A DNA stretch of 64,000 nucleotides from Eukaryota sp. TZLM1-RC (Eukaryota > Protista > Metamonada: BaSk clade). This document shows positions 8,191 to 59,270 of this stretch, piece after piece. Both the position numbers and the translations under genes were made by a program. The notes beneath the pieces were generated by a model. It searched no databases. It saw only the letters and a list, made by a program, of their open reading frames with translations, and was not told the DNA's origin. Location: the NCBI GenBank assembly GCA_040285825.1, contig JAUPSS010000009.1:868001-932000 (forward strand). Reading direction: 5' to 3'. Each line of letters starts with the position of its first letter. The stretch's first letter is position 1.

Positions 8191-8194
8191 AATA

Positions 8195-15290: not shown

Positions 15291-15409
15291 CCGTGTTATT
15301 GATGTCAATACAAGAATTGAAAGTGTTGATACAATAATGCGCGCTGTCTATAATGACAATGAAATAACAAGTAAAATTAAAAACCATCTTAACAATTATC
15401 TCTGTCTTA

Positions 15410-16010: not shown

Positions 16011-16479
16011 AACCACTTGTATTTCCGCTTTGAAGAGCGTCCCTGTAAATTATTCCCGTATAATTACGGGCAATTCTTCTTTGAGGAATTAGTTTTTACC
16101 CAAGCCTACCTACAAGGAACGGAGAGGGTAAAATATGGTTTCCAGTATCATGGCAACATAAGAGTAGAGGATGTCTTTTTGCAACGGAAGAGGTTCCTTT
16201 AGATTTGTAGAAGCTTTTGGTGAGTTCTTAGTTATTGGATTCTTTACTGGGAGGGAAGAAGTCCCTACACCTAGCTTCAATTCCCAGTAGTACTTAAGTG
16301 TAGAGGGGATTTCACAAATCTTCTGGCGAATTTCTGCGTGAAGTACTCTTCGTGTAACTCTAGTAGGGAGCAACGAAAACAAAAATACAAAAAGGCTTTC
16401 ATTAAAGATCAAAAATCTCAATTACGACGGATTTGTGAACCTCATCTGCAGGCGCACCATACCTATCATTTGTTGCTAC

Positions 16480-17420
16480 CTCATTCCATTCAAATTGGTC
16501 AAAAATTACTTTAGCTTTAGTGTAAAAACCTCCATGAACATTAAAAACCAGAGCAACAACAATTAGTAAACAATTTGGTTTATTAAATTCAATTCTCTTA
16601 AAATTGAATATTTTGAAATTTCATCAGAATATGCTTTCGAAAACACATCACTTCAATTATTACCACAACCTCCAACTATGGTAACATCAAAAGCAATTTT
16701 AGTTGATGTTTGAAAGCCATCAACACGTAACTGAAACCAAATTTGAATTTCCTTCTCAGATTCAAAATTATTTAATTCGTTAATCAATTATTGACTTTGT
16801 CATGTCTTTGTGTAACCATTCTTTATGCCTTTTTACATTGAAACGAGTGATCTAAGCCTAGGTCTCCATAACCGCACAAAGTACATATCACAAATTGTTC
16901 TCATTGAAGCAAGCTCAGATTTATTAGGTATTTAAAGCAATCATCTGAGAACGTGAAATTTTGAGAAATAGGCAAAACTTTCAAGAATCAAGATGATTGA
17001 CTGTCACAATTTGAAATAAATTGTAGTCGTCAAATTTTGATAGTTTTTCCTTCAAAAAACTCAATTTTTCCTTAAAAAAATAAATGCGTGACTTGACGTT
17101 GGCAAATTTTAATTCGTTTGTCCCAAATCAAAGTCAAAACCAGCAAAAAAAGGTGATAAAGCTGATAGTAAAACCCTATACTGATCTCTTGGAATTAAAT
17201 TTGTTAAATCAAGATCACGTACAGCCAAGTATACAGAAATTGAATAGCAAATATGTGCAACTTGGCCCAGATGGAGAAACCCTAATCCTCCCAAAGAATG
17301 AGGCAAATAAATTAAATTAAAACTATTTGATTCTTCCAATCCTATGAAGTTGAAATAAGCAACAAATTCTGAAACCCAAAGATAAAAACCCATTATGGTG
17401 GATTCAGAAGGTTGAGGAAA
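16480..17420 (-). mobile_element. Diverged, decayed 3' fragment of a family D-related retrotransposon
   Basis: GFYLWVSEF..LIYLPHSLGGLGFLHLGQVAHICYSISVYLAVRDLDL parallels family D GFHLWKAEF..FFIPLESGGLGFQDLSVVANIAYSCSLYSSVKDLNL; downstream GLDHSFQC and KIAFDVTIVGG are also shared. Confidence 0.8.
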
Positions 17421-34530: not shown

Positions 34531-34798
34531 CTAGTTTTACTCATGGCTTAAAACCAATTAATCTGTTTTCGATCACAATTATAGATACTATCACTGAATT
34601 TAACCTCCTTGCTCCCCATTTGTGACAATCACTGTTGCCAAGAATAAATAAAGACATAGAGGATATTTATTGTTGCCCAATGTTATTATGCATGAAAAAA
34701 AAGAAATGATCATCAAAATATAGTTAAAAAGGGTTACTTATTCTATTTTAGAGTTAAATATAACAAAAATGATTAAAAAAGACTATTACAAACTAAAT

Positions 34799-35825
34799 CT
34801 ACTTCTTGCTCTTTGAAGATCGGTATTTTCCAATAACTGTGATAAGAAAAATGAAAAAGTAATAACATACCAACTGCATGGTCACGTTCATATGGTTCAA
34901 GTGGAATCTGTTCAATGGGTTTAAAGTTTTCTTTAACAAGTTTTGAAACTTCCCTGGCAAATACGACTTCAGCAGCGACAGTAGAATCGATACAGTTTGC
35001 TTTAATACTAATGAGGAAAGCACCATCGTGTTTTAAAAAGTGATGAGCATTTATGGCAACAATTCTGGCTTGATCTGGCTGGGCGACGTCTGCGAATATG
35101 GTATCTACCATAGGGACAAGCATTCTGTATTTGTGTGGATGACGGGCATCCTCTACAATGGGAACAACGTTGGTCCTTTGCTGGGCAACACCTATCAGAT
35201 CACGACCAGAACGATGAGAGAATTCAACTGCATAGACCATTCCTTCGGGACCAACGATATCAGCTACATGTGAAACTGTGGTTCCATTAGCGGCACCCAG
35301 GTATAAGACCTTGCTTCCTGGGGCAATATAGATATCATCAACACCTCCAATAACGGTTGCTGCAAGCTTGGATCTAAAGGGGTTCCAGACACGATATTCT
35401 ACCTTCTCTTCATTGACATCGACGGAAATACGCTTTTCACCATAGACGGAAACACCAGGAACAGTGTTAAGAGTGGCCAGGGCGTCTTCTTCTTTTCCAA
35501 CAGACTTGACGACGAAGATACCGGGATGACGATGAGGTTCAACGTGGACTTTGCTACCGCCTCCGAGACCGGGCCTTCCACCACGAGAACCACCGCGGCC
35601 ACCTCTATCACCGCCACGACCGCGACCGCCTCTATCACCACCGCGGCCTCTTCCACCACGGCCACCCCTGTCGCCACCACGGAAGCCGCCTCTATCGCCA
35701 CCACGGAAACCACCACGGCCACCTCTATCACCACCGCGACCGCGACCGCCTCTATCGCCACCACGGCCTCTGCCACCACGACCGCCGCGGCCTCCGCGAC
35801 CGCCTCGAGAATCACCAAAAGACAT
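34799..35825 (-). CDS. NOP1: Fibrillarin (box C/D snoRNP 2'-O-methyltransferase); exons 35825-34871 and 34836-34799
   Basis: N-terminal RGG/GAR domain; [56 protein letters not shown]. Removing a 34-nt intron gives the conserved end [18 protein letters not shown]. Confidence 0.97.
34837..34870 (-). other. 34-nt spliceosomal intron in fibrillarin
   Basis: GTATGTTATTACTTTTTCATTTTTCTTATCACAG; removing it restores the canonical fibrillarin C-terminus. Confidence 0.9.
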
Positions 35826-37880
35826 AGGAAAAGAGTAAGAGTTGTGTAAGAGGAAGTGAGTTTGAATACCTGTTTTTGTTACTAAATTACCCTAGCTTAC
35901 TTCAATTCAATGAATCAACCCACAGGTGAATAAACCCCTTCTTTGGTGTTGTATTGATCATGTAAAATAAAAAGTGTCATTTTGGAAGGGTTTAGTTTGG
36001 CTCCTTTGTTAGTTGATTTGCAGAACAGTAAGCAATCAAATTAAATTAAACTTGACGTTTTGATGGTTAATGAAGCTTTGACTTCAGCAAACGTCCTGTT
36101 TCTCCGAAAAGGTATGGTACCGATGATACGTTGCTGCGGGCAACCATTTCCAGATTCTAAAAGAGAAAAAGGAAACCAATCACCATGTGACATTGTTTAT
36201 CAGCTTGCAAAAATCTGTATTTGAAAATTCAGTAACGACTGTTGAAAGAAGCTTTTGAAAAGAAATATGGTGGTTTTCATCAATATGTTTGCAATTGAAG
36301 TTAGAATGTGTAACAACAAAAGGAGTCAATATTTGAGTAGTAGATAGTTGTGGTAATTCAATAATTGATAATATAATTAAATGGGTAGTTTCCCCAATGT
36401 ATCAATGTATCATTTGTCATTTTTTAACAAAGATGGTTCTTTTTGAAGATGAAAGGTACTCTATTTGAATTTTTGAAGGTGATTAGTATTGAGTAGTTCG
36501 ATCTTACTGCTGCTGATGTGTAGTCATCAACCTCTCCATTTAAAGTAAGTTACAGCAGGTCAGTTTGATTTTGTTACCAGATTGGAGAATCCGATAACAA
36601 GAATTCTTGAATTGATTCATTTACTAACAGTTGACTTTACACCATACCTTCAAATTTCAAGAATTCCGTCCAAGATGTCTAATTCGGTGCAATTACAATA
36701 ACTATTGAATGTTTTGCCAAAAGCTTAATCAATTGCAATAATTCCAACATTGTAATTGCAATTCTGAAATTCAGAAATATGTTTGACTAAAAGTACTAAA
36801 CAGTAATTGAACTTTAACGGTTGAGGAAAGTTTTGAAACATCCTATTAATCTTTAGTTTACTTCAACATTTCGAATCCATTTCCAATTAGAATAACAAAA
36901 ACTATAGTAAAATACAACCACATCAGCTGTAGCAGGAGCTTTTATGTAATGGAGACATTAAATGGAGACATAATTCAATTGTCAATATAGTTGTTAATAC
37001 CATAAATAATTCCTGCATTATTACGCTGTTTCCTGTTATTGACCCCAGATATCAAGTACATAATTATGAAAACTTTGCTTTGGTTGTGACTGAATTGCAA
37101 CACTGTCGTTTTTTTTTCACAAAAAATACATGTTTAAGTAAACAGCAGAGAAGGAGCAGTTTATAGGTAGGTCAGGTGTAGTAAAAGACATATAATGTGA
37201 TAATTTTGCATGTAGTGTTTGGGATTAAGAAGTGTTCAACACCGTGTTCTCCTTTCAAATGATGTTGTTTTCAGCAGCGCCTTTGTTTGAAGAACACTGT
37301 TACAAATATTGTAAATTCGAACATAGCTTGCATCATTGTTTATCACTTTAGATTGAATGCTCGAACCAATTCTTATTGGAGATACTGACACAATTGCTTA
37401 TGTTGCATCATTTACGCAAAAAATTCGCATTGTGAACCCATCTATGAAAGATCAACTTGTGATCAAACTTTGTGTGAAATTGTGTGTGAGTAATGTTGGC
37501 TATGTGTTACTTGATCAGTACAAACTCATGATTACATTTTCAATTGATTTTGTATATATCTGAATTAATTGAGTTTATTAATTTTTAAACATTAAATTGT
37601 AAAAAAAATAAAAAATCAAAAACTATACAATTGAATGTTGTAAACTAATAAAACAAATGCTGTAGGTGAAAGAGTATCGTTTTTGATACGATTTACAGAG
37701 GCTCATATCAAGTTCCTAGTTTCGTATATTGACCAATGGTTGTTTATTACAATCGTTGGTCAAATCTTTAAAGTCCATTTTGGGACAATTAATATAACAA
37801 TTGTGGTGTTAAAGTCTGTGCTATGGTCATTTGAGTAGTCATTGGTATGATTGGTTGAATGGTCATTGGTATGATTAGGT

Positions 37881-40800
37881 CTTTATTGAATTTCTAAAAG
37901 AAAAAGAACGAAACAACTATAAAAGTAAATAAAAAAAACATAAACTACCAAAACCTACGAGCTTCATGAATTCTTTGAAGAATAGAATTAAATGCTTGAT
38001 TACATCTAAAACTATTTTTTCTGAATTATACAACTAATTTCACTGCAAAGCTCAATCCAACCAAAACGTTTAAATGTTTCTTTAGTTTTCTTGTACCAAT
38101 CCCCATGGACATTAAAAACTAAAGGAACAATTTCTGAAATTAAATTGTATTCTTTTAGAATACTGTGTTTCCTTATTTTAGTAGCAAAGGCTTGAGAGTA
38201 AGCATCTTGCCATTTATTTCCAAAACCAAGGAAAGTATGCTATCAATATTATTTGGGAATTTTTTGGTTCTTTTTGTCCTCCTTTTGAACAAAATTTCGT
38301 TAATATTTCCGAAGATTTAACCAATATAGCACCGAGAAATCAGTCATCCGAGAAATTAAGTAAAATTTTTGAAGACAAATGCTTTGACAACAAATGGTCC
38401 AAGGCTTTGTCAGCTTTAAGTCCCGGAGTCAAAGCACCGAACAATGAAAATACAGTAGATAAACTGAAAAAACTTCATCCTTATGAAGACCCTGTTATGG
38501 ATCAAAATTTTTACGGCACATACTGGGAAAATTATCCATTGATGCCATCAGAAGTTTTTTTCGGTTATCAAAAAGAGACCTCGTGGTAAGTCTGCCGGAC
38601 TTTCTGGTATTACTATTGATCATGTAAAAGCCGCGATTATTTCTTCAGAAGATTGCCTTGGTTTATTGACCAAATTTTTCAACCAAATATTATCTGGTCA
38701 ACGCAAGTACCCAGAAGAATTAAGAAGTTCTCGTTTGACTGCACTTGTCAAAAATTCAAAAATGGATGTTCGTCCTATTGCAGTCTCTGAGAGCTTACAT
38801 AATATTTTTTTCTGCGTGTTGCTTAAGCAGGTTCAATGAAAAAGCTAAAAGATTTTATTACCCTTTCAATATGGTATAAATACTACAGATGGAGTCTCTT
38901 CAGCGATTTTTGCTACTGATGTCTTATTTCGTCAAAATGAATCCAATGTTTGTATGTCATTGGATTTTTAGTAATGCTTTCAATTCGCTAAGTCGTCGCA
39001 GTATCCATGGTGCTCTATTGCAATATATGCCAGAATTAATACCATATTTTCAATCAACATATTGCACATATTCTAATTTACATTTTGGTAACAACATTTT
39101 GATTTCATCAAGTGGCGTAAAAGCAAGGAGATCCGTTAGGACCTCTTTTGTTTTGTTTGGCCATTCATCCTATTCTACTGCAAATTCAAGAGATGTTTCC
39201 TTCACTAAAAATGATTGCATATATGGATGATGTTGTGCTTATTGGTGAATTAAATATTGTGAAAAAAAGCAACTGTATGTTTTAAAGAATTATTTACCAA
39301 AATTGGTCTCCGACTTAATTTACTTAAATGTGTTTTGTTATCGAATTCTCCAGTTTCCACAATAATTGATGATATTGAAATTCAAGCCAAATTATATTCA
39401 ATTGATGCTATTCGTCATTTGGGTTCTTTTTTTAGGAAATAATGATGAAATTACCAAAAAAATTGTTTGAAAAGTTGAACTCAATTTCTGACAAAATTGA
39501 CCGAATGATGAATTTAGATATAAAAAAACACATCAAATTTACCATTATAAGACTGTGTTTTTAGTTCCAATTTTAATCATATATTTCGATCTACAAATCC
39601 TCTCGTCACTAGACCTTTGGCTCAAAAGTTTAATGAGTTACGTGCAAAAAGTTCTGTCTCAATTACTGGGATGTAAAATGTTTCAAATTCCAGATCATGC
39701 TTACCTTAGTCCACAATATGGTGGTTTAGGGTGGACGAAGGCTTCTATTCTTACCTCGTGTGCTTTTTGTTGGTGGATGCAGAAATGCAATCTTTGAGTT
39801 CTCCGAAAGATTTGCAGATTGGGAAGATTTATTGATGACAACGCAAAAGTTCCACTGTTTTTGCATTAGATGAAGAAATTTCAAGAATTGACGTGAAAAA
39901 TGGGGTCGATGTTTTCCCCAATCATTCAATGGCAATATTCCAGAAAAAATGTTTTAAATTTGAAGTACACTCTTCGAACATTACAGAAAAAGATTGACTG
40001 GAATGTATGAAAAAGATCTTTATAATAATATTTGCAGCTCGGCTGTTTTTAAATCAAGATCTTCACTCATTGTTATTGGAAAAGGGTGTTTGTGAAAACA
40101 AGGTGTCAGATTCTTCACCTTTTGTAACCATTGTACCACGAAGATTTGGATTGTGTGCTACTAATGAAGCATTTGTAACAAAAATGAGATTATATTTGAA
40201 CATCCCCATTAACCAATTATTATCAAAAGAAAAATGTATTTGTTCGAATTCACCTCAACTCACTTTGCGCCATGCTCTAAATTGCTCTAAATTGATAACT
40301 TATCGTTCTTCATTACATGATGCTGTTAGAGACACTGTTTTCAATATGGCACAAACTGCAAGGATATCGTGTATCAAAGAGCCCCTGCTGAAAGAAACAC
40401 TTTCTCTGAATAATTTTAGTTCTGATGATAGAGGTGATGTATACTGTGATTGGATTGATAATTCTGAAGCTATTGTTGACTTTGTCTCATGTAATGTTGC
40501 AAACGATACTTTGGTTCACAGAAGAAATCTTAATCCTGTGGCTGCTCTGGATTTTAAAGCAAAAGAAAAACATAGAAAATATGATAAAGAAATTGAAGAT
40601 GCAAATATCGATAGAAATACACAGCTGGTTTTTATTGCTTTTCCATTTTCGATAAATGGAAGATTATCAGTTGAAGCAGAAACTTTTTGGATGACTTCCA
40701 AAAAAATGGTGAAAGAAAAAACAATGAAAAGATTTGATATTTTTTTATGGCGTTCACGGATTCAATTTGCCATTATTAATAGATTACCGCGGTTTTTCAA

Positions 40801-43800
40801 TCGAATTAGAGAAGCTTTAGCTAGACAGCAAGCAAATCAAGATTTTGTAGAGGAAATCTTGGTTTAATGATAGTCGTCCCATTAGTTATGATTTAATTTA
40901 ATCAAGTGTGCAAATTCAATAAATTAATATATATTTCCAAAACCACCAACTATTGTAATATCAAACGCAATTTTGGTTTTGGGATCAAATAAATCTAAAT
41001 AAATTTTTTTTAAACCAATTTCAAATTCCTTTTCCTTTTCATATTTGGAGATATTTAATAAATAATCTCTAACTTCATCATGTCTGTTTTTAATGCATCG
41101 TGAAACACCTTTACATTGAAAACTATGGTCTAAACCGAGATTTGTGTAACCACATCTGGGACACTGATGATAAAAATTATTAAAAATTAATCGAAGATTC
41201 AGAAAATAAGACATGAATTCATCAGAAAAAGTGAAATTTGCATTAAAAGGTAATGCATTCAAAAAACTACCTGAAAGTTCAGAACAATTAGCTTCTAATT
41301 GTAATTTTTCCATATCAGACATTGTTTTTTGAAGAGAATTCATTTCATTTTTATAAAATTCCTTTGTTAATTTTGATTGAGAAATTATTATGTCTTTATC
41401 CCAAATAGACTCATATCCTACAAATTGTGGATTTAAAGTAGAATAGATGAGGTCCAAGTCGGAATTTGTGACAAAATTCATCAAATTCAAATCTTTGACA
41501 GAAGAATATAGTGAACATGAATAAGCAATGTTAGCTACAACAGAAAGGTCCTGAAAACCTAGTCCACCTGACTCCAAAGGAATAAAAAATAAACTTTTTA
41601 AATTTAATTTCTTGGAAATTGATAAAATTAAAAAAATTAAAAAATTCAGCTTTCCATAGATGAAAACCAAGAACTGTATTGTGAAATGGAATGGTACGAG
41701 CCCAATACATCAAAATAGAATTAATACATTACTTAAAAAGTAATAATTGATTCTGAATTGGTAGTTCCTTTAGTAAATTTAATTTGGGGATAAGTTCATT
41801 CCTTGTTTTATCATCAAGGAACTGACTTTCATATTCATTTGTACCAATAGGACTACCTAAACACATGAAATCCTCATTATTTTGAAAAATCTTTGTTTTT
41901 GCTAAATTTAAACTTAATCCAATTTTTGAATAATGATTAGATAATTCAACCAACAATTGATCACTATCAATTGATTCATCCAGTAAAATATAAGTATCAT
42001 CTAAATAAGATAATACTGACACACCTTCAATATCACTTAGTAATTTAAGAATTTTAGAAGTTCCCAAACTATATAAAAATGGAGAAATTGGATCTCCTTG
42101 TTTGACTCCAGTCGAAGAAAACACAACATTATCTTCAAAAAATAACTTGGTTTGCCATAGGACCAAGTATAAAAATTAATTAATTGTGGATAATTTTGAA
42201 TTAAATTATGATAGATATGATTTCTACTAATACAATTAAATGCATTAAAAATATCTAAACAAATTACCCTATCATATTTTTGGTGCAGTTTTTTCAATCT
42301 TAATGAATGGATAATTTTCTCTGTACCACTCTTAACCTTTACACCAAATTGACCCAAACTTACAAGTTGAGATGGATCTAAATCAACAGTTAAATATTTT
42401 GATGCGATTCTATAAACAATCTCTGAAATTGCAATCGGACGAACACCATTATTAGGTTTGGTAAGCACAATTAATTTGGAACTTAATAAAATAAATGATA
42501 AAGTATCATCTAAACTTCCATTGATTATGTTTTCAATTAAATAAACTAAAACTTCAGTCAACGCTTCACTGAAGATAGTGGGAAGATGAGTTAAATTGAA
42601 TCCCGATATACCACCAGCTGTTCCTTTTTTAAAATAAAATTTTAAAATAAAATTAACCATTTAGCCTTTTCACGTACATTTAATGAAGAGCTAAGAATAA
42701 AATTTTGTACGTGAAAATAAGTTTTTTTAACAGGTTGTAAACTTAGATTAACACATGCTAAAATTTTGAAAACCTGAATAAATAAATCATCAGGTATTTC
42801 AAATAAATCAGTAAAATCATTACTGTTTGAACAATTATTTTCGAAAGTAGATAAATGTTGAAAATAACTAAAAATATCATCCTTTTGGATGTTTTTATGA
42901 ATTATGCCGAAATGTTTTGATATACCATTTTCAGCGTAAATTCTGTCACAATTATCAATTGGACATACAACAAGTGAATTTGATTGTAAAAATTCATCAT
43001 TAAAAAATTCGACTTCATGAATATTTCTATTATTTAAATGTTTTAATAATCTTTGTTGATCTTTGAAAGGGCCAGCTCCACATTGGCATTTATGAATAAA
43101 ATTATTTTCAGTGTTAAATATAACTTCTGATGAAAAAGTGGGTAAAGCAATACTTTCATCTAAAGTGTCAAATAAAGGCAAATAATTAGCACTATTGGAA
43201 TTAAGACCAGTTTTAGCCCACTGATCTGCAATTTCATTTTATTATCATTATTGTGTGCCTTTACCCAATTGAAAATAAATTGAGTATTTAGTTTCTGTAA
43301 CAGTATTTGAATCAAATTAACTTTCTTCTTAATAATATTGACTGTAGCGTTAAATTGACCAGATAACCATTTAATAACATTTTGACTATCAGTGAAAAAT
43401 TCAACTCTTTTAGGTTTGTATTTTAACTTAAGGAGAGATAATAAACCCAAAATAATAGCAGATAACTCAGCAGAGTTGATGGTAGCTTTATCTAACACTT
43501 GACCATATTGATTGAAAATTAGTTTATCCTTTATGTAAAGCTGACATGAACATCCTGCTAAACGTTTAGCGATACCATTATCATCAATAGTGGTTGCTGA
43601 ACCATCTGTATAAATAAAGATGATTGGCGGTTCTGATAAGAGAGAAGATGAGTGTTCAGAAGAGTCTTGTGAACAAGAATGTCTAGATTCGTAATGTGAA
43701 GATGATTTTTCCAAAACTGTATTTTTTGTGTTTGCAGTAGAGTGCAAATTTAAGAAAGAAGAGTTATCAGAAACACTAGTGGAAGACGTAGGGGGTAAAA

Positions 43801-44115
43801 TTGGAGGTTGAGGAGGGCGAGAAGGAAGGGAAGTAGATAAAGATCTGATGTGATTAGAGGTATTGACAAGTGGCACATCCGATATTTTCTTCTTAGGGGG
43901 ATCAAAAATACGTGCGTCAAGTGTCGATGAACGTGGCAGAGAACTTCTTCGTGGTTGACCACCTAATAAACCATTAATTAGTTTTGAGGTTGGTTTTGAG
44001 CTCGAGCAAGACATGCTACGAGTTCTTCTTGTCTCAACCATAAGAAGAAATTTAAAGCTTTGAAGTAGGTTGGAGGATGGTAGGTTATTGAATGATGATA
44101 GGGAGGAAAAAAAAA
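37881..44115 (-). mobile_element. Full-length RNase H-containing CRE-like non-LTR retrotransposon (family D, ~3.5 kb without the nested insert)
   Basis: 12-bp TSD GTATGATTAGGT at 37869-37880 and 44116-44127. Coding from ATG 44041: disordered N-terminus, RNase H (YTDGS, NSAEL, TDSQ, WVKAH, NEIADQWAK), two C2H2-like fingers, RT (VRPIAISE, LDIFNAFN, GVKQGDPISP, YLDD), CCHC knuckle (CPRC..H..C) and RLE (RHDEVRD, FDITIV), continuing at 38228 past the nested insert. Confidence 0.9.
38229..40931 (+). mobile_element. 5'-truncated family C CRE-like retrotransposon nested antisense in the family D endonuclease
   Basis: 14-bp TSD TATTTCCAAAACCA at 38215-38228 and 40932-40945; RT motifs (DVRPIAVSE, LDFSNAFNS, QGDPLGP, AYMDD); RLE (CICS..HALNC, HDAVRD, RGDV, VDF, KHRKY). 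Confidence 0.9.
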
Positions 44116-44240
44116 GTATGATTAGGTGAGTTGCATGTAGTCCTTATGTACTAGATGTGATCAACTTGTGATCAAACTTTGTGTGAAATTGTGTGTGAGT
44201 AATGTTGGCTATGTGTTACTTGATCAGTACAAACTCATGA

Positions 44241-46576
44241 TTTTTTTAAAAAAATTTAATTTTATTCTAAACCTATAAATCAACATCTAAAAAATCCATC
44301 TCTCCCAAAACAAAAACACTAGATGCAACTCTCTCATAGTGAGATCCAAGAGAAAGCAAAGCATCAGAAACCATCTTCAACATCCCCTTAAAAATAGAAA
44401 ACACAATTCTATTTTGCCAAAACAATCTGTTGAAATTTCTGCCAGTTCTTCTCTTTACAATCATTTCAAAATCATCCAAAAAACGTAAAGCAGTTGGTGC
44501 AAGTGAACCAAAAGGGAAAATACAAATGGATACAAATTGTATTTTTGCATGCTGTAGACTGGCCAATTTGGACAAAGGTTCATTGTATTTTTTGAATTTA
44601 AAATTTTCAGCATTTGAAAGGGGATTATGAATTTCAGAATTAACAAGTCTTTCATTTGAGGCATTACAAGGATCAACAGACATTACATCCAATAAAATGA
44701 AGCTTCCATCTAATCCAGGTAATATGACATCACCTCTATTATTCTGATGAAAATCATTTTCAGCATCAAACAGATTTGACAACAAAGGTTCCAAGAAGGA
44801 TTCAATTCTATGAGATTTACACATACAATATAACTGGTCTCTTACAGCATCATGAACCTTGCTTCTAAAAGTAATAAAATGTTTACAATTTAACAAATGA
44901 GTAGTTGTAATTTCTCGAGAACATTTACAAATTAAATTATGAGGTAAATTATCAGGCCAGATAAAGGAACGAAATCTCATATTCAGAGTCCAAGCAGAAT
45001 CGGATAAGAGAGTACCATAAACTTGTGGAATTGTTGTTACTAAGGCAGAAGAAGTACTGTCACACATATCTTGTAAAAGATTTGCAAAAGCGGGATTCTT
45101 TTTCTTGGCCAAGCCAAGTCTAACATCAAAATCCAAGCTTTCAAAAATCTTTGACAATTTTTGTTGAAGCTTTTTACAGCAAAACTGTAAATTAAATAGA
45201 GATCGGTTTGGAATTTCTTGAATTGATTGAGGAAAACATTTGGTCCAAATTTGTGGCGGTAATTTTTCAAGTTCACAAGATAACTCATACAAATAGGGAC
45301 TACAATTGGGGACTAACAGATGAGAATCATCAGGAAATCTACGAGAAAATTCATAAATAAAATTTTGCCACCACCCAAGAATGCTGATTGACACAAAATT
45401 GAAGATTTAGTAAAACCAATACCACCCAAATTTGCTGAAGAAAATAAATGGCTTTTCAACATTCCTGGTTCTACATCCAATAAATCAGCAAAAATTCTGT
45501 TCTCAATGAATTAAAAGATAGACAAAAATCTAATGCTATGGAAGGAGCACAAGATCTCAAAATGTGGGTTATTCTCCCAGTGTAGCAAATTTTAAGCATG
45601 AAAAATTTAATATGCTTTTCTATATCTAAAGAAGAAATTGAATCAAGTTCAATTTTCATTTTTTCCAAAATAACTTGCAATTCATTCTGAATTTGAGGCA
45701 CATTTCCTAACCAACAACCAAGGAACTTAAAAGCATCACTACTATAATTAGTAAAAGGGATAATAGAATCGTTTATCAGGAGGTCTTGAGCAGAAGAGCC
45801 AATCAGAAGGCATTTGCTGGCATTAAGATGAAGCCCAATATTTTCATATGAATCGGCAATTTCTTGAGCAACCAATTCTAGTAAATCAAATGAACCAATC
45901 AAGGATATATCATCCATATAAGCAACTATTTTTATAGAAGGGTATTTTTGCTTAATGATATTTAAAGTTTTGTGAATAGCTAAACAAAACAATAATGGGC
46001 CTAAAGGATCTCCCTGCTTCACTCCAGAAGATGATTTAAGACCAAATGAATTAAAAATTAAATCTGATTCTTTCCCATAAAAATGGTAGAAAAAACTCGA
46101 TAGCTCAGGAAAATCAGATTTAATAACTTCAAAAATTGCTTCTCGCTTTACAGAATTAAAAGCATTTTTAAAGTCGAGATTAAAAATAAAATTATTTTCC
46201 TCTGCATTAAAAAAGGTATCAGAGGCAATAGCAGCAACAGAAGCACCATCAATTGTTTTGATTCCAAATTGATGAGGATTCAAAAATGTAGAAGCTTTGT
46301 CTTTGACACGATCGAAGACAATTGATGCTAGCAAACGAGAAGGGATTCACCAACAGCAATTGGGCGTATTCCATCAGGTTTGATTCCGTTTCCAGGCTTT
46401 ACTAAAGCAATCAGACGTGCTGCGAGTAATTCAAATGGAGGATTAATTTTCAAAACAATCAATTGTTGAAAATAGTGGGCTAGATCATCAGCAATTTCGG
46501 GAGCACTGGAACACGCTATTTTTAACAGATCAAAAGAAATTCCAGATGGGCCTGCTGCTCATCTGCTCATCTGCTC
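44241..46576 (-). mobile_element. 5'-truncated family A CRE-like retrotransposon inserted in the 462-bp repeat
   Basis: TSD AACTCATGA(TT) at 44232-44240 and 46577-46585; A-tail at the left junction; RT (LDFKNAFNS, GVKQGDPLGP, YMDD) and RLE (CKC..HLLNC, HDAVRD, RGDV, LLDV, KFKKY). Confidence 0.92.
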
Positions 46577-47047
46577 AACTCATGATTACATTTTCAATTG
46601 ATTTTGTATATATTTGAATTAATCGAGTTTATTAATTTTTAAACATTAAATTGTAAAAAAAATAAAAAATCAAAAAGTATACAATTGAATGTTGTAAACT
46701 AATAAAACAAATGCTGTAAGTGTAAGAGTATCGTTTTTGATACCATTTACTGAGGCTCATATGAAGTTCCTAGTTTCGTATATTGACCAATGGTTGTTTA
46801 TTACAATCGTTGGTCAAATCTTTAAAGTCCATTTTGGGACAATTATTATAACAATTGTGGTGTTAAAGTCTGTGCTATGGTCATTTGAGTAGTCATTGGT
46901 ATGATTGGTTGAATGGTCATTGGTATGATTAGGTGAGTTGCATGTAGTCCTTATGTACTAGATGTGATCAACTTGTGATCAAACTTTGTGTGAAATTGTG
47001 TGTGAGTAATGTTGGCTATGTGTTACTTGATCAGTACAAACTCATGA

Positions 47048-48994
47048 TTTTTTTTTAAAAAAATTTAATTTTATTCTAAACCTATAAATCAACATCTAAA
47101 AAATCCATCTCTCCTAAAACAAAAACACTAGATGCAACTCTCTCATAGTGAGATCCAAGAGAAAGCAAAGCATCAGAAACCATCTTCAACATCCCCTTAA
47201 AAATAGAAAACACAATTCTATTTTGCCAAAACAATCTGTTGAAATTTCTCCCAGTTCTTCTCTTTACAATCATTTCAAAATCATCCAAAAAACGTAAAGC
47301 AGTTGGTGAAAGTGAACCAAAAAGGGAAAATACAAATGGATACAAATTGTATTTTGCATGCTGTAGACTGGCCAATTGGGACAAAGGTTCATTGTATTTT
47401 TTGAATTTAAAATTTTCAGCATTTGAAAGAGGATTATGAATTTCAGAATTAACAAGCCTTTCATTTGAGGCATTACAAGGATCAACAGCCATTACATCCA
47501 ATAAAATGAAGCTTCCATCTAATCCAGGTAATATGACATCACCTCTATTATTCTTATGAAAATCATCTTCAGCATCAAACAGATTTGACAACAGAGGTTC
47601 CAAGAAGGATTCAATTCTATGAGATTTACACATACAATATAACTGGTCTCTTACAGCATCATGAACCTTGCTTCTAAAAGTAATAAAATGTTTACAATTT
47701 AACAAATGAGTAGTTGTAATTTCTAGGTAGAATGTATTTTTTGAATTAGCACACTTAATTAAATTAAATCATAACTAATGGGACGACTATCATTGAACCA
47801 AGATTTCCTCTACAAAATCTTGATTTGCTTGCTGTCTAGCTAAAGCTTCTCTAATTCGATTGAAAAACCGCGGTAATCTATTAATAATGGCAAATTGAAT
47901 CCGTGAACGCCATAAAAAAATATCAAATCTTTTCATTGTTTTTTCTTGCACCATTTTTTGGAAGTCATCCAAAAAAGTTTCTACTTCGACTGATAATCTA
48001 CCATTTATCGAAAATGGGAAAGCAATAAAAACCAGCTGTGTATTTCTATCGACATTTGCCTCTTCAATATCTTTATCATATTTTCTATGTTTCTCTTTTG
48101 CTTTAAAATCCAGAGCAGCCACCGGATTAAGTTTTCTTCTGTGAACCAAAGTATCATTTGCAACATTACATGAGACAAAGTCAACAATAGCTTCAGAATT
48201 ATCAATCCAATCACAGTATACATCACCTCTATCATCAGAACCAAAATTATTCAGAGAAAGTGTTTCCTTCAGCAGGGGCTCTTTGATACACGATATCCTT
48301 GCAGTTTGTGCATATTGAAAACAGTGTCTCTAACAGCATCATGTAATGAAGAACGATAAGTTATCAATTTAGAGCAATTCAGAGCATGGCGCAAAGTGAG
48401 TTGAGGTGAATTCGAACAAATACATTTTTCTTTTGATAATAATTGTAATTTCTCGAGAACATTTACAAATTAAATTATGAGGTAAATTATCAGGCCAGAT
48501 AAAGGAACGAAATCTCATATTCAGAGTCCAAGCAGAATCGGTTAAGAGAGTACCATAAACTTGTGGAATTGTTGTTACTAAGGCAGAAGAAGTACTGTCA
48601 CACATATCTTGTAAAAGATTTGCAAAAGCGGGATTCTTTTTCTTGGCCAAGCCAAGTCTAACATCAAAATCCAAGCTTTCAAAAATCTTTGACAATTTTT
48701 GTTGAAGCTTTTTACAGCAAAACTGTAAATTAAAAAGAGTTCGGTTTGGAATTTCTTGAATTGATTGAGGAAAACATTTGGTCCAAATTTGTGGCGGCAA
48801 TTTTTCAAGTTCACAAGATAACTCATACAAATAAGGACTGCAATTGGGAACTAACAGATGAGAATCATCAGGAAATCTACGAGAAAATTCATAAATAAAA
48901 TTTTTGCCACCACCCAAGAATGCTGATTGACACAAAATTGAAGATTTAGTAAATCCAATACCACCCAAATTTGCTGAAGAAAGTAAATGGCTTT
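47048..48994 (-). mobile_element. Second family A copy at the same position of the next repeat unit, 5'-truncated, with a nested family C fragment
   Basis: 3' junction gatcagtacaaactcatga|TTTTTTTT as at 44240; differs from copy 1 by several substitutions (AEDDFHKN vs AENDFHQN, MAVD vs MSVD). Confidence 0.9.
47725..48442 (-). mobile_element. 5'-truncated family C copy nested in family A
   Basis: 11-bp TSD TTGTAATTTCT at 47714-47724 and 48443-48453; near-identical to 40215-40920. Confidence 0.9.
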
Positions 48995-51085: not shown

Positions 51086-51297
51086 TAATTTAATTTTAAT
51101 TTATTTTCAAAACCACAGTCTAAAAGTCAATATCTTCAAAACAAGCTTCCACACAATCAAACCTTACAGCAGCAATGTTTTCATAATGTACACTGACAGA
51201 CATTAAAGCTTTCGAAATCATTTTAGGAATTGATTTGAAAATAGTAAAAACAATACGATTTAGCCACAAGCGACGATCAAAACGCTTATTCATTCTT
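51085..51297 (-). mobile_element. Family B 3'-end fragment
   Basis: RMNKRFDRRLWLNRIVFTIFKSIPKMISKALMSVSVHYEN...EDIDF*. Confidence 0.8.
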
Positions 51298-51867
51298 TTT
51301 TTTTAATAATTTTAATTTTATTCTAAACCTATAAATCAACATCTAAAAAATCCATCTCTCCCAAAACAAAAACACTAGATGCAACTCTCTCATAGTGAGA
51401 TCCAAGAGAAAGCAAAGCAACGGAAACCATCTTCAACATCCCCTTAAAAATAGAAAACACAATTCTATTTTGCCAAAACAATCTGTTGAAATTTCTGCTA
51501 GTTCTTCTCTTTACAATCATTTCAAAATCATCCAAAAAACGTAAAGCAGTTGGTGCAAGTGAACCAAAAAGGGAAAATACAAATGGATACAAATTGTATT
51601 TTGCATGCTGTAGACTGGCCAATTTGGACAAAGGTTCATTGTATTTTTTGAATTTAAAATTTTCAGCATTTGAAAGGGGATTATGAATTTCAGAATTAAC
51701 AAGCCTTTCATTTGAGGCATTACAAGGATCAACAGACATTACATCCAATAAAATGAAGCTTCCATCTAATCCAGGTAATATGACATCACCTCTATTATTC
51801 TTATGAAAATCATTTTCAGCATCAAACAGATTTGACAACAAAGGTTCCAAGAAGGATTCAATTCTAT

Positions 51868-52021
51868 TGATGGTCTTGGCTGTTGGTTATTGTCTGACAT
51901 ACAATGTAGAGTAACAGAAGTGTAATTTATTACGAAGAGGAATTGTATTCTCTCTTCTTAAGCTAACAGGCAGAATACTAATAACTAAACTATTAACTAT
52001 AAATACTATTCAAGACTAACA
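51868..52021 (-). repeat. 3' LTR (154 bp)
   Basis: Identical to 59117-59270; termini TGTTAGTCTTG...CAAGACCATCA form an imperfect inverted repeat. Confidence 0.95.
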
Positions 52022-55000
52022 CTGCCTTTTCCTCTCTTTCGAGCGACGAGCCCTGGAAGCTCTAGTCACAGGAGGTGAACTAATGGAATTATTACGCTTC
52101 TTGGGAGGAGCGGATTTAGTACGGTGACGTGCTTTTGAAGTCTTGATAAAGTCTTTATACGCGGCAGTATTTTGGACTGTAGACACATGCTCAGTGGTGA
52201 TCTCTTTTCCAGGCCATTGCACTTGGTAAAAGTCACCGTCCTGACTGAGCACTTTTTCAATGATGTGTTCTTCGACATCACCTGAGCGACCCAGGAGTGG
52301 AACTCATCGTTGGTGGGCAAGCTGGAGTGCCAGGGTGCTAAATGTTTGACGCTAGCTTGGACAATCGTACCTGTGCAGAGATTCTTAATATTCACAGACG
52401 AATTGGATACGATTTCAGTAATTAGGAAGGGTCCTGAATATTCTCCATGAAGCTTAGCGGAAGAGCCAGATGCTCTCAATACCAATTGACCAACTTCAAA
52501 AGGGTTTGGAGTTGACGATCTAGTTAGCTTGGAAGCTTTGGAAGCTTGATGGTGTGCTGCCTTTTCCTGTTTCTCTTTCAATCTTCGAAATTTAGATTGA
52601 ATTTCTTGAATAAAAGATGACTCAGACGTCGAGCTTTCAATGATTTCAAGAATTTTGCCAGGGTCTGATCTGGGAGACACATCTGAGCCAAAGATCACTT
52701 GGTATGGGGTTTGGTTGGTAATTGTGCTCTTGGAAGAGTTGATCAATAATTGCACATAAGGCAAGTATTCAGACCACACATCGTAGGCGTTGAAGTCTAC
52801 CAGCAATTTCCTCAGGTTTTGCAGGATGTCTCTGTGTCGGCGCTCTACCAAGCCGTTGGACTGAGAAAACCTAGGAATTGACTTTGACACCTCTATGCCC
52901 AAAAATTTACTTAATTCGTCAAAGACAGCCTTGGAAAATTCAGGTCCATTATCGCTGTGTATTTGAAATGGAATACCAAAGGTGGCACAGACTTTCCAAA
53001 TTAATGCATCTGCAGTAAGATTAGCATTTATCTCTTTTAAGGGCACGATGATTGTGAACCTAGAGAAGCTGTCAATAAATACGAGGATGTATTTGTAGCC
53101 TTCTTGATCTTCTGGTAGAGAACCAATAACGTCGGCGTTGACGCGAGCAAAAGGTCTGTCAGCCCACAATGAACCGGTTGGGGGAACATGCAGTTTGGGA
53201 ACTGGCTTTGTTTTCTGACAGGAGGGGCATTCTTGGACGTGCATATTCATGTCGGTGAGCATGTTTGGCCACCAATAATCGCTGTTCCTGAGCTTGTTCA
53301 GGCTTTCAGCTTTGCTTGGATGGCCTCCTTGCAGAAGTCCATGCAACAAGTTAAGGGTGTCCTTAATGAGTGATTTGGGAATCACTATCTTGTTGTCGTG
53401 CATCATAAATAAATCAAGGTTATTGTTATGACCACAGTTGTTGAAAGAGGGGTCTTTGGAAGCTATGGCAAGCTTCTGTTCGGACCTAATCCTACAGAGC
53501 CATGGCTCGAAAATAGGCAGGTCGTTGGAACATCGTTCTCTGATGACCATGATACGTTCGAAGTTGTTTAAGTCTTCGATGTAGTATCTTTCATTTTCTG
53601 TTCCATCAATTTTATCGATGTAAAATATTGGATGAAAATTTGGAGATATTTGATGGGACAAATGATTGATCTCTTGATGGTCTATAGGCGGAACTATTCG
53701 AGACAACATATCAGCCCAGAAGTTATCTTCCCCTTTGGTATGTACCAAATCAAAGCAGAATTCAGAGAATATGGGTAACCATCTTGTTACAATTCTGTTC
53801 TTCTCAGGAGCCGTGAACATGTAGGTAAGGTTTTGATGGTCTGTGAATATAACCAGTTTCCTTCCTTTCAAGTAGTTTTCAAAACCACTTTGAGTTAACA
53901 TGAGCAGGATGGCATAGAGTTCCATTTGGTTTGTCGGCCAGTTCTTTTGCGAGTTGGTTAACAACCGGCTGAAGAAGCTGATAGGCCTACATTTCCTGTT
54001 GATCAGGGGGGTACCGGGGTCGTCGACTTGTTCCATTTGTTCCCATATGACGCCGTCTACAGCAATGTCGGATGCATCGCAACTAATTAAAATTTGGTTT
54101 TCCAGCGGAGGTAAGCTGAGCGGCATGTGCTTCGCTATCAGTTGTTTGAACTTTTGAAGGAGTCCGTCGTGCATGTCGGTCCATTGAAGGCGTTGCGCGC
54201 GGGGTTTGGGTTTAACGTTGGAGTTATTTCCATCCTTCTTAGTCAATCTGATGATAGGAGCGATGAGCTCTGATACCTGAAAAAGCCATTCTCTAATGAA
54301 GTTGACTGATCCTACGAGGCTGCGGACGTCTTTGATTGTCTTTGGTCTAGGTAGATTCAGCAAAGATTCAACGCGAGTGGGATCGATAGTCCGTTGTTTG
54401 TTTTGGAAAACACTGCCCAGTATCTTGATTGGGTGTCTGGAAGACACGAAATGGCACTTTGGAAGTCCCAAGGAAACTCTTTTGCATCTGGCTTGATCAA
54501 GGACGCGACGGAGGCGTTCAATGAATTCGTCAAAGGTTGAACCCATGATTATGATGTCATCTATGTAAATGAAGACACCGTCTCCAGAGAAGATGTCAGC
54601 CATGACGTTTTGGAAAACGGCTGGGACATTCTTTAGGCCAAAAGCTGCACGTTTGAACATGATGCTTTTTGCCAGGAATGCTCAGGGCTGTTTTTCTGCC
54701 AATCCTTTTCAGCAATCTTGAGTTGCCAAAAGGCTTTGGGAAGGTCAAGGGTGCCTATGTAGTTCGCTTGGGAGAGAAATACCAGCACATGGGAGATCCT
54801 TGGAAGGTTGGGCTCAACAGGAATGGTGTTGGCGTTGACTCCGTCCTTGCCACTATAATCACCAGTAAGGCGGGGCTTACGGTGATCTGGGTAGACCACT
54901 AGACAGACAGGGGAGCTGAACTCATGGTTCGATGGGACAGCGAATCCTGAGTCTACGAGTTCGTCGAAAATTTGGTTAGCGACCTCTAGCCTGGCTGGAT

Positions 55001-55733
55001 TCAGGGTCCTGGGGGGTCTTCTAACTCTGACGTCTTCATTGTAGAAGTTGATTTCCATGGGAGGGCAATCAATACCTTCAGCATGAGGCTTGAGGGTAAA
55101 AACGTCTTCGAACTCTTTCAAAGTTTGAAGTAGGGACTTCTTGAAATGGTCGTTGTCGAGGTTGATGGTACAACCAGATGAGTTGATGTGTTCCAACCAA
55201 CGTGTGGAAACGTTGACGACTTCTGAAGCTTGCGATATTCGATGGTCGAATTCGGCTTCAGGTAATAGTAGTGTACGACAGGCGTCGTCCATTCTAATGT
55301 AAATGCCCTTGTTGTTCATCAGCCCAAGGTGACTCAACAAGTCAGCACCAATGAGAATGGTCTCATGTCCAGGAACGATGCTGAACATGTGTTTCACGTG
55401 TACAATCTGGGTAACACTACCTAGTCTAATGCTAAGGGTTCCAGAAGCAGTTCCAAGGGACTGTGAGGTAGTTCCATCAGCAATCTTGTATGATATGGTT
55501 TCGTTGGAACGCCCCATGTTACAGTTACTGATGACGTCTTCCGTGACTACTGAGCATGTTGCACCAGAGTCAATTATGCCTTTAACTTCGACATTGTTGA
55601 TCAAGAAGTTTAATTGTAGGCAGTTGTGATTCATGGATTGTACCATAAAAATTGTATCACAATCATGTCCATTTAAGTCGGCTTGTTCTGAGAAGAAGTT
55701 AGCCTGACTGTTGGGTATTTTGGTAGTTTCCAA
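52016..55733 (-). CDS. Gypsy pol (protease, RT, RNase H, integrase, chromodomain-like tail), frameshifted in this assembly
   Basis: IIDSGAT; LDLPKAFWQ, FGLKNVP, YIDD; CDASD, ELYAI, TDHQNL, ADMLSR; HHCC, SDNG, VERRH, GPF; after a frameshift EEHIIEKVLSQDGDFYQVQWPG. Confidence 0.92.
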
Positions 55734-55919
55734 GTTGGCAAGTGGATTGATTAGAGAATCTTTCCATGCTGAACTTTCTGTGTGTGGTTGTGTTGTTGTA
55801 GGGGGTATGGTTTCTAAAGTACATAAATAGTGACGGGAACGTTTATTGTAAGAAGAGCCTCTGCCTCTGCCGCGAGTACCTCTTCGACTACGGAAACCAG
55901 AACCTCTAGAACTTCTACC

Positions 55920-58900
55920 TCAAGCTTGTTGTTGAGCTTGTTGCTCTCTCCATTTCTTGCTCCTTTGGCAGTCTTCACTGGGACACCTTTCGGTCGGATG
56001 GCCCTTTTGCTTACAGAAGTTGCATTGGACATCAGCGGCCTGGGCAGACGATTGTGGTAGGCTTCCTCCTCTCTTACTTTGTTTGGGGCGTTTACCTGGA
56101 CCAGAACCTCGTGATCTGGGGATGTCAGGTGGGGAGGGAACGACCATGGGAGGTCGGCGAGAGGCCTGCTGGTGATTTACTTGGTTCTGATAGGTGAAAT
56201 CGACATGGTTTAGCTGTTCCATGAACGATCTGGCGTTACAAAAATTCTAGTATTCAATTTGGAGAACACTAAAGAATTCACCAAGGGTGTGACCATCAGA
56301 TGAGTAATGAGAGGGAGAGGACCAGATCCTGAGGAGTCTGTTCCTGATAGGGATAATTCCTACGCTTTCTAGGACATGAGTAGCGACTACCCAGTCTGAA
56401 AGTCTATCCGCTGGAGGGTGGAGCTTATGGAGAATGTTCTCAATTGATGAGAGATGCCCCTAAACTCTTGGATGGCAGTGAAGCGAGTCAGAACTCTGCC
56501 AATGTTGACCATGAAGTCAATCCATCTATTGCCATAATCTCTTTCCGACCAGTCCATGTTAGTTGCGAGGAGAGCTCGATTAGCCTCATCCAGTCTGCTG
56601 AATTGGGTTCTTCTCAGAATTTGAGCCCAAATTATGCGTTCGTCTCTTGAGGTAGGAACCGTGGGAGAAGACATAGCTAGGTGAGCACCTTGATATCTTA
56701 ACGCATTTAGCACCTCAGGGGTGACACATTCAGCGAGGCCTCGGGGGTTGATCCTCATGGCTTGACGGAACAAGTCCCATTCGTGAACTGGTTCTCCAGT
56801 GATGTTACCAAAATACTCATTTGTCGATGGTTGGGAACCTTCTCTAGCTAGTTCTAATTCTTCACGTAGTCTGGCAACTTCGTTGGCTAGAGCTATCTGG
56901 GCTGGATCCTCAACGTTGCCTCTTGTTTCTCTTAGGACTCGGTCGGTACGACTCCAGAGAATGAATTTGTTGACAAACTTCAGAAGTTTATCAGCGTCTC
57001 TCAAATCGGAAGCTTCAAGATATGGACGTTTAAGGCGGTCCCTACGTCTGTCATCTCGATCTCTTGATCCAATCATTGAAGAAAGGAGAAGGCTACTTTC
57101 GTATGTGCCCGAGAAGGGTGATTGATGAGAGGAAATAGAGGTTGTTGAACCTGTCGTGGAAGGTGTAGGTTGGGGTTGAGGGGCTCGACTAACGGGAGTG
57201 ATGGGAGCAGGTACTGCATCAGAAGATGTGATGGGAGTGGGTGATTCACTGCTCACAGTGATGGCGTCGTCGTCGGCTTGTTCCATAGCAGATTGGTTGG
57301 GATTAGGGGTTTCCGTGGTAGAAAATGAATCAGTTTCCATAGGAGGTTGTGATGATTCAGAAGCTTGAGCGGAGGAAGATGGAGCTTCACTCCGTTGAGG
57401 TTGGGGTTGGGCAGAAGGTTCTGTCTCTTCAATCTGGGCTGGGACCTGATAAGAAGAGATCGCTGGTTGGACCAAGCGTGTCTTTTCAATTCGACCTTCA
57501 ACCATGACCCATTTTAACATCCTGGATTCTATGCATCCAGGGAAAACCGTGACGAGCTGGAGAGTTCTTTGAAGATTGCCCGATCTTCTGTGGTCAGGAC
57601 CACAATATGAAGCTATATGGTCAGGACGTCTGTCGTAAAGGAAGAGTCTTTCACCATATGTGGTTTCGGTAAACCACCACCCTGTTCTATAATCTCTGTC
57701 GATGAGGATATCGAGAGATGCGTTGTACCCAGGGCTGAACCTAGGGTATGGGCAAGGGTTGTGAACATTTATGAAGAGGTTGTCTTCTTCTCCAGCGAAG
57801 CGTCTGAATACTCCTTCTCGAGTAGTTCTCATGAACCTAACTCCGGGTCTTGGTTCATAAGTTGGTTCAGGGTCATTCCTGGAGGTTTCTGGGGTGATCC
57901 TTTCATCGGAAAGAAATGGACCAATTCTGGGAGAGATCCATAATCCTAAGTCGTTCTCGACTTTGGGACCGTAGAAAGGAGGCCGTTTATTGCTCATTTC
58001 CGTGGGAGGGATGGCTTCTGGATCCCCTGGAATGACTCGTGTGTCCCTATATCTAGCGTAAGGGTTGTGCTGACGGGAAGCACCATGATAAACACTTGAG
58101 CTAGCGTAGGAGCTAGTTTGAGAAGGGGTAAGTTGAGCAGGTGTAGAGGATGTTCCTCTTCTAGCTTCAATCTCTCTGTCCAATCTTTTTCTGTGTTCCC
58201 AGTTTCGTTCTTCTTGGAGAAAACGCTCTATATATTCTTTAGAGACCTCACCAGGAATTTTGTCAATTTCAGAAGAAGGTGCCGTGGGAGGGACCTGATG
58301 TTGAGGTAGAGGGGAGAATTCCTTGGGAGGTTCCTCGTACTCAACCAAATCTGAAAAGATTTGTTCGTACCTTTTCCTTTGCTCTTCGGAAAGATACGAA
58401 GGAAGGTTAGAAAGGCTAGGAATGGGATCACTAGCCTGGTGAGGGGAAACAGATAGATTATTAACTCCACTAACTGTTGAAGTCAGAGGAGACCCTGAAG
58501 CTGGAACAGCAGGATTTTGAATGTTCCTCCTAACAGTTGGAACTGGAGGGAGGAGCTGTTGAGAATGAGAGGGTGGAACCTCAGAACTAGATGGAAGGGA
58601 TGAAAATGGTACTTAAATGGCCTTCTTAGAGGAGGAAGAAGGTTGGTCTTCCAATCCTTCCTTTGCGGTGAGAAAAGGTTGAACAGTCTCTCTGCTCTGA
58701 GTAGAAGGTGAAGGTGGTACTTCAGAGCTTCTTTCAGGGAGGGGAGAAGATGGGACTTCAGATGCCCTCAATTGCGAAGGAGGAAGAGGAGCAACGAAAT
58801 CCTCTACATCCTCGTCGTCGTAGAAGACCAACGAAGGACTTATTCCTTCCGAAGGAACAGAATCCTTGGGAGGGTTGTCTCCTTCCACAGGAACGGATTC

Positions 58901-59149
58901 CCGAGGAGGGGAACTTCCTTCCATGGGAACGGAATCCTCTGGAAGGGAACTGTCTTCCTTTGGGATGGAACCCTCAGGGAGAGTTGCTTCAGGAAGCGCA
59001 GAAGCTTCAACCGAAGAAGGAGGCACGGAAGCTGGGTCTGTGGTTAGTGGTGAGGAAGAGGGACCAGTCTCTTCCTCGTGGATCCTACGTCGAGCCTCAG
59101 GGGACCCAATACGTATTGATGGTCTTGGCTGTTGGTTATTGTCTGACAT
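55920..59149 (-). CDS. Gypsy gag-like region (long, Pro/Ser/Glu-rich), in several frames in this assembly
   Basis: ORFs 58613-59149, 56387-58348 and 55920-56222 are colinear; C-terminal zinc knuckle CNFCKQKGHPTERC; the first ATG lies within the 5' LTR. Confidence 0.75.
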
Positions 59150-59270
59150 ACAATGTAGAGTAACAGAAGTGTAATTTATTACGAAGAGGAATTGTATTCT
59201 CTCTTCTTAAGCTAACAGGCAGAATACTAATAACTAAACTATTAACTATAAATACTATTCAAGACTAACA
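59117..59270 (-). repeat. 5' LTR (154 bp)
   Basis: Identical to 51868-52021. Confidence 0.95.

Follow-up and report, generated by a model that had tools for sequence, protein, structure and literature searches.

Two related retrotransposon families at fixed bases of a probable ribosomal-spacer repeat in Skoliomonas litria

In a 64,000-nt stretch of the genome of Eukaryota sp. TZLM1-RC (assembly GCA_040285825.1, to which protein searches also assign the sequence; contig JAUPSS010000009.1, positions 868,001 to 932,000; hereafter "the window"), a strain that is called Skoliomonas litria in the genome literature, a 462-bp tandem repeat is split by two retrotransposon families, A and D, at defined points. 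The locus thus raises the question of what this repeat is and why retrotransposons join it at the same bases. The original prediction, made from the window sequence alone, proposed that the repeat may be a multicopy RNA gene, with a small-RNA gene array of the spliced-leader type as the candidate, or a functional satellite, and that several site-preferring families used it as a safe harbour. We found that family D, together with a relative that we named D2, joins the repeat at fixed sites, while family A turned out to be a generalist. With a probability of about 0.8 for the explanation as a whole, the repeat is a sub-repeat of the spacer upstream of the 18S ribosomal RNA (rRNA) genes, the window holds an orphan fragment of it, D is a compact retrotransposon of the R2-like kind, and the spacer is a harmless landing place that D and D2 reach by cutting a specific sequence.

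The window contains only 2.2 units of the repeat, all on the forward strand. A partial unit (the last 82 nt, 37450-37531), which borders unique DNA and matches units 1 and 2 at their ends in every base, is followed by the first 349 nt of unit 1 (37532-37880), and the rest of unit 1 (44116-44240) is found on the other side of the family D element. The element is flanked by a 12-bp duplication, gtatgattaggt, at 37869-37880 and 44116-44127, so the second part of unit 1 consists of the second copy of the duplication and the last 113 nt of the unit (44128-44240). When the duplication is counted once, 37532-37880 and 44128-44240 sum to 462 bp with 97.5% identity to unit 2, which is intact (46586-47047, 462 bp) and carries a hairpin at 46783-46817, the D2 site near 46743, the D site at 46940, and the motif AGGTGAGT at 46937-46944. 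All the sequence features described in the original prediction were present in the window, and the coordinates given for them were about right.

To see how the repeat and its insertions behave elsewhere, we used two pieces of the window (46572-46647 and 46685-47047) as unit queries in the repeat searches, and the sample comprised six loci on five contigs (L010, L011, L012, L014, L015, and L017), of which L010-L012 had been reached through relatives of the C-terminal open reading frame (ORF) of family D. A total of 111 units were counted in these loci, which means that the repeat is multicopy well beyond the window, as had been supposed. The units have a period of 454-465 bp and are 83-98% identical to window unit 2, and 78 copies were aligned.

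Family D was found in six copies (one in the window, one each in L010, L011, and L012, and two in L014), and all six sit at one base of the unit. The insertion with target duplication noticed in the window is confirmed, and the other five copies, all outside the window, share its junction base, which is more than chance would give. On the element strand, D ends with ...TTCAATAAAG, which is followed by A(C/T)CTAATCATAC (ACCAAATCATAC in L012), and these 12 bases are found again at the 5' junction. Four copies could be mapped at either end, each with the same 12-bp duplication. The five mapped 5' ends were all different, one being full length and the others lacking approximately 176, 2620, 2670, and 3020 nt. 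Different 5' ends at one base indicate independent insertions at one site, not copies of a single event.

The second family, D2, is related to D with 48% protein identity and approximately 70% DNA identity at the 3' end. Its 17 copies all join the unit at coordinate 169-180, beside a small GTATC...GATAC stem and approximately 180 bp from the D site, and they fall into at least seven 5'-end classes. The target duplication of D2 is roughly 9-14 bp, a length delimited only approximately. Thus, for both D and D2, independent copies with different 5' truncations were observed at a fixed target base. The safe-harbour part of the prediction therefore held for D and gained a second family at a further site, but family A, whose other junctions are unrelated to one another, has to be taken out of it. 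Some of the insertion-bearing units were further amplified as higher-order repeats: a block made of one unit and a D2 fragment of 542 bp occurs seven times in L014, with a period of 1025, and twice in L017.

The D copy of the window (37881-44115, reverse strand, 6235 bp) is full length and frameshifted, has no poly(A) tail, and starts on its own strand with a run of nine Ts and a C-rich tract; an element of another family is nested in it (approximately 38229-40924, forward strand). The encoded domains are an N-terminal RNase_H, then RVT_1 (E = 3e-23), and then an endonuclease-like C-terminus with CCHC and conserved RHD, D, and K residues, of which CCHC, H, and D show little or no variation among D, D2, and A relatives. 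Among solved proteins, those of R2 are the closest (E = 8e-9), and together with the RVT_1 match this places the reverse transcriptase of D in the type without long terminal repeats (non-LTR). A search with the D polymerase protein gave only four relatives, with 23-33% identity, and exact look-ups of window ORFs gave no entry. Judged by its sequence, D is probably a compact R2-like retrotransposon, in which RNase H and reverse transcriptase precede CCHC and a putative restriction-like endonuclease (RLE) region. The D2 fragments that we examined span the C-terminal region only, and the RVT_1 gene calls beside D2 copies belong to other families.

What the repeat is was indicated by the genes next to it. 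L010 (contig 12, bases 1-12837), L011 (contig 7, bases 407-22710), and L012 (contig 9, bases 1-16674) are filled with tandem copies of the window unit and begin at, or at most about 400 bases from, the first base of their contigs. The other sampled arrays are on contig 4 (L014 and L017) and contig 13 (L015), and two of these lie within 75 kb of contig starts. The 5' part of an 18S rRNA gene was identified by Rfam in L015 (1-451, 419 bits) and in L017 (1-539, 480 bits), and each of the two arrays is upstream of its 18S gene and oriented like it, 2.4 kb away in L015 and 6.8 kb away in L017. Because the arrays are upstream of and codirectional with 18S, the forward strand of the window is the rRNA-sense strand, and D and D2 are antisense to it. 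The best explanation for contigs that begin with the satellite is an assembly that stopped inside ribosomal DNA (rDNA) clusters, and the 460-bp satellite at which contigs of this strain break off is explained along with it.

A second spacer repeat of approximately 1.15 kb was seen between the 460-bp array and the 18S gene, with three copies in L017 (4072-7321) and one to two copies in L015 (1009-2175). In L017, an LTR retrotransposon (gene 1421-3957) lies between the 1.15-kb repeat and the 18S gene.

The arrays at contig starts could also be read as a subtelomeric or centromeric satellite that has nothing to do with rDNA, in which case D and D2 would be chromosome-end elements like GilM/GilT or MoTeR. 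Three arrays do begin contigs and two more are within 75 kb of a start, and the genome paper names apparent telomere repeats at contig ends for only two other assemblies and not for TZLM1-RC (PMC11316075). But two arrays are directly upstream of 18S genes, contig ends inside rDNA clusters account for the array positions, and a TTAGGG run is absent from every locus sampled, where the contigs stop inside the arrays and the tips themselves are unseen. This satellite reading was rejected on account of the 18S genes beside the arrays, and we regard it as very unlikely.

The boundaries of the arrays were compared as well. The arrays of the window (37450) and of L010 (9830) start at an identical position of the unit (...AAGTTGATC, reverse strand) against unrelated flanks, and this shared position may be the natural start of an amplified segment; the arrays of L011, L012, and L017 have other boundaries. 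The window flank and the L010 flank are 68% identical over approximately 300 bp in the wrong orientation, which was not used as evidence. The unit also contains ...GTTACTTGATCAG...TGATTTTGT, which, as a lead and not as a result, resembles the 3' terminus of yeast 25S rRNA.

The spliced-leader reading needs a donor that does not vary. It holds that the unit is an array of small-RNA genes with a leader ending in ...GGTATGATTAG, a GT donor, and hairpins downstream, and the window does contain AG/GTGAGT with a 24-nt internal duplication ahead of it, the hairpin, and ATTTTGG in a loop. The perfect splice donor and the duplication are thus real features of the window unit, but among the 77 aligned copies that cover the donor region, AGATGAGT was found in 49, TTGGTGAGT in 15, and the AGGTGAGT of the window in only 6, so that the donor is a minority variant and GT is absent from most units. 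Rfam gave nothing at gathering score on the unit pieces, only chance-level matches at E up to 10, and an Rfam scan of the whole window found no known RNA gene. The arrays sit in ribosomal spacer, and the genome paper does not mention trans-splicing (PMC11316075).

The 15-bp hairpin is real too and is conserved among the units. Its majority form folds with -20.7 kcal/mol on the rRNA-sense strand (z = -6.4) versus -16.2 kcal/mol on the other strand, and the window hairpin with -20.3 kcal/mol on the forward versus -11.8 kcal/mol on the reverse strand. A preference for the rRNA-sense strand speaks for the small-RNA reading, but it fits an origin from transcribed spacer as well as it fits any small-RNA gene. 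No compensatory change supports the structure, since none of the 24 proposed pairs was changed on both sides; shuffle controls gave the same result as the observed alignment, so covariation says nothing either way. A metagenome scan for the hairpin returned no match. Because of the variable donor (6 of 77), the lack of an Rfam match, and the spacer location, the spliced-leader array was rejected, and we find it hardly credible; a tempting but wrong trans-splicing candidate in this protist group is thereby removed.

For the ribosomal-spacer explanation, the course of events may be pictured as follows. D and D2 would each recognise one short sequence of the unit and nick it at a fixed base; for D, the cut on the rRNA-sense strand would be ...GATTAG(A/G)T^GAGTTGC. 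The element RNA would be copied in by target-primed reverse transcription in the orientation antisense to rRNA, which would leave 5'-truncated copies with a target duplication, about 12 bp in the case of D, and units carrying an insertion would then sometimes be multiplied by unequal exchange within the array. Family A would be an abundant generalist that came to lie in both window units by chance. We infer the sequence-specific nicking and the target-primed reverse transcription because of the fixed junctions, the duplications, and the 5' truncations.

Several observations weigh against this explanation. No 28S gene was seen beside any array in the sampled loci, and the window is without any rRNA gene according to Rfam; the Rfam scans of the unit pieces likewise gave no large-subunit rRNA match. 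The structure model of the putative C-terminal endonuclease of D had a predicted local distance difference test (pLDDT) value of 49, which is too poor for a fold comparison. Two D2-like copies with approximately 90% identity to D2 were found outside the repeat among ordinary genes (window 16473-17402, reverse strand, and L016 6031-7063). In L016, the flank of the D2-like copy opens with AGTAAATC, as does the D2 target of the unit. Either these bases are the end of D2 itself, or the element selected a look-alike site.

Retrotransposons specialised on rDNA are the textbook example of mobile elements that use a multicopy safe harbour, and R2, R4, R8, and R9 are rDNA-specific elements with an RLE. 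To our knowledge, the known rDNA-specialised retrotransposons sit inside the rRNA genes and disable the copy that they hit. D and D2 share with the R2 group the single-ORF type (presumed for D2) in which reverse transcriptase is followed by CCHC and an endonuclease region (putative in D and D2), the fixed rDNA base, and the 5'-truncated copies. Unlike the R2 group, they target a spacer sub-repeat and not the 28S or 18S genes, and they are antisense to rRNA, so co-transcription with rRNA is unlikely. D further differs from that group by the RNase H ahead of its reverse transcriptase. CRE1/CRE2, SLACS, CZAR, and NeSL-1 are RLE retrotransposons specific for spliced-leader genes; they resemble D and D2 in using a tandem multicopy array as a safe harbour, but the target of D and D2 is not a spliced-leader gene. 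As to the repeat itself, the rDNA spacer sub-repeats of animals and plants (Xenopus, Drosophila, and mouse, for example) are tandem units of a few hundred base pairs that are homogenised within a species and in many cases arose by duplication of the transcription unit's ends or control regions. S. litria differs from these by an orphan array away from rRNA genes, as in the window, and by units that are colonised at fixed bases by specialised retrotransposons.

An RNase H before the reverse transcriptase is known from the Utopia elements of oomycetes, RLE elements in which this position was called unique and which target the U2 small nuclear RNA (snRNA) genes (Kojima and Jurka 2015; PMC4640811). 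So far the layout has been reported only for oomycete Utopia (PMC4640811), and D shares with these elements both the layout and the specificity for a multicopy sequence; the Atlas structure search also gave neighbours with the Ulp1-type protease that is typical of the Utopia group. D differs in that Rfam found no U2 match in the unit. Membership of D in Utopia was rejected on account of the target.

GilM and GilT are described in PMC10999387, with reference to Arkhipova and Morrison (2001), as Giardia retrotransposons confined to chromosome-end regions, where they are linked to telomere repeats and form head-to-tail arrays of their own. Giardia belongs to a related group of protists, the sister lineage Fornicata, and its rRNA genes are also in chromosome-end regions, but D and D2 differ by the absence of a telomere repeat from the sampled loci. 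An assignment of D and D2 to the telomere-associated type (GilM/GilT, MoTeR, HeT-A) was rejected because no TTAGGG run occurs in any of these loci, in which the contigs stop inside the arrays.

A literature search with narrow terms found no retrotransposons specific to spacer repeats. New in the present analysis are the base-level proof of two families at two sites of the spacer unit, the finding that family A lacks specificity for the repeat, and the rejection of the small-RNA gene reading. If the ribosomal-spacer explanation holds, two related families in a deep-branching free-living protist divide a non-coding spacer repeat between them at two fixed bases, antisense to rRNA, and they provide two new natural pairs of target sequence and (putative) endonuclease.

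The behaviour of family A, which has an RVT_1 domain and a C-terminal ORF without a Pfam match, was followed in nine further loci (L001-L009, 187 kb in total) that had been reached via an A protein. The family is present in hundreds of copies, with identities of 94-99.7% overall and of 97-99.5% for most of them. Approximately 50 of its 3' ends, with roughly 35-40 distinct flanks, were collected in the nine loci, and these flanks were mutually unrelated and shared no motif apart from a weak tendency to start with T. The repeat was absent from all nine loci, no A 3' end there adjoins it, and none of the 111 units elsewhere carries an A copy. Thus, when the junctions of both families are tabulated as the original prediction suggested, D is always at the same base and A is not, and family A is a generalist without site specificity.

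Within at least five of the nine loci, identical A junctions are found more than once, the element fragments being present there in tandem or as segmental copies. These are repeats with a period of approximately 940 bp in three copies in L001 (9300-11750), of 1139 bp in L003 (300-1650), of approximately 5.2 kb in L004 (2300-11800), and of 3340 bp in L005, and an inverted pair in L009. In L006 (7650-10800), an internal A fragment of 655 bp forms three full tandem repeats followed by a longer copy. Family A fragments with their flanks thus occur in short tandem arrays or multi-kb tandem duplications, and local amplification seems to be common in this genome.

The remaining puzzle is that two A copies of the window are joined to the repeat at one base. 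The 3' ends of A1 (44241-46576, reverse strand) and A2 (47048-48994, reverse strand), visible as T-runs on the forward strand, begin at 44241 and 47048, directly following ...caaactcatga, and the corresponding site at 37531/37532 is unoccupied. It was correctly noticed at the outset that A ends at the same base in two consecutive units (44240 and 47047) and that the site at approximately 37530 is empty. A1 is 5'-truncated. Its poly(A) tail is at 44241, and the target sequence aactcatga (9 bp) is duplicated on its two sides (44232-44240 and 46577-46585); 17 extra bases (46560-46576), in which catctgctc occurs nearly twice, lie between the truncated element and the duplication. A2 contains a nested insertion (47725-48439), and its similarity to family A ends at 48994; the 5' end is lost, and there is neither a target duplication nor a further repeat unit.

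One possibility is that the base after ...CTCATGA is preferred by A or attracts it, and that A1 and A2 were inserted independently. The two copies differ at nine to ten linked sites, where A2 carries the haplotype of another subfamily that is also found in a copy in L003 and partly in one in L008; their poly(A) lengths are 7 and 9, their 5' ends are unlike, and A1 has a 9-bp duplication of its own. Another generalist family has two copies, one in L010 and one in L014, that are inserted in opposite orientations at roughly one spot of the unit. But the approximately 50 other A 3' ends are next to unrelated sequences, the 111 units elsewhere carry no A copy, and a second hit of a generalist on the same base of a 462-bp unit would have been unlikely in advance. 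A run of seven Ts in the last 30 nt is found in A1 and A2 only, among approximately 45 copies, A2 has no target duplication, and mosaic patterns are general among A copies, with all four combinations present at alignment sites 43 and 709. We regard independent insertion as slightly less likely than not.

The other possibility is that unequal exchange duplicated a unit that already carried a single A insertion, and that gene conversion from some other A copy later replaced the body of A2. This agrees with the common amplification of insertion-carrying units in this repeat, with the identical A junctions that recur locally elsewhere, with the T7 run that A1 and A2 have in common, and with the flanking 125 nt, which are identical for both. 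It needs a conversion tract of more than 1 kb that stopped 70-210 nt before the junction, and it has to account for the different 5' ends; we would give it an even chance. Both histories require a single recombination event, whose breakpoint would fall between columns 1063 and 1203 of the alignment, and the odds between independent insertions and a single amplified insertion are about even. A doubtful third idea is that the spacer unit is repeatedly nicked or broken at the base after ...CTCATGA and that generalists make use of this, with A1 and A2 as independent captures at a lesion made by the host; the cause might then be a replication-fork barrier, the end of transcription, or a third endonuclease. 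To judge by yeast 25S, this base may lie in a part of the unit derived from the 3' end of 28S.

The other generalist just mentioned is a third retrotransposon family, also present in L003, and its copies in the A/T-rich part of the unit are at L010 8811-9694 and L014 8435-9625. The third A copy of the window, which had been reported as starting at 51297, is real: A3 is full length (51297-52023 and 59114-62215, reverse strand), is split by an LTR retrotransposon (52024-59113), and has another element as its host site.

In four DNA sequencing runs from one study, 23-50% of the 31-letter words of the unit were present. One of the four runs, which carries a second organism label, contained 35% of them; it represents either the same strain relabelled or a close relative with the spacer repeat.

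Next to the repeat, the window encodes a fibrillarin (34773-35825, reverse strand; Pfam Fibrillarin, E = 3e-101) with an RGG-rich N-terminus, whose reading frame continues into an apparent intron near the C-terminus. The gene is 1.6 kb from the orphan spacer repeat, and this position of a nucleolar gene beside a ribosomal-spacer relic is probably a coincidence.

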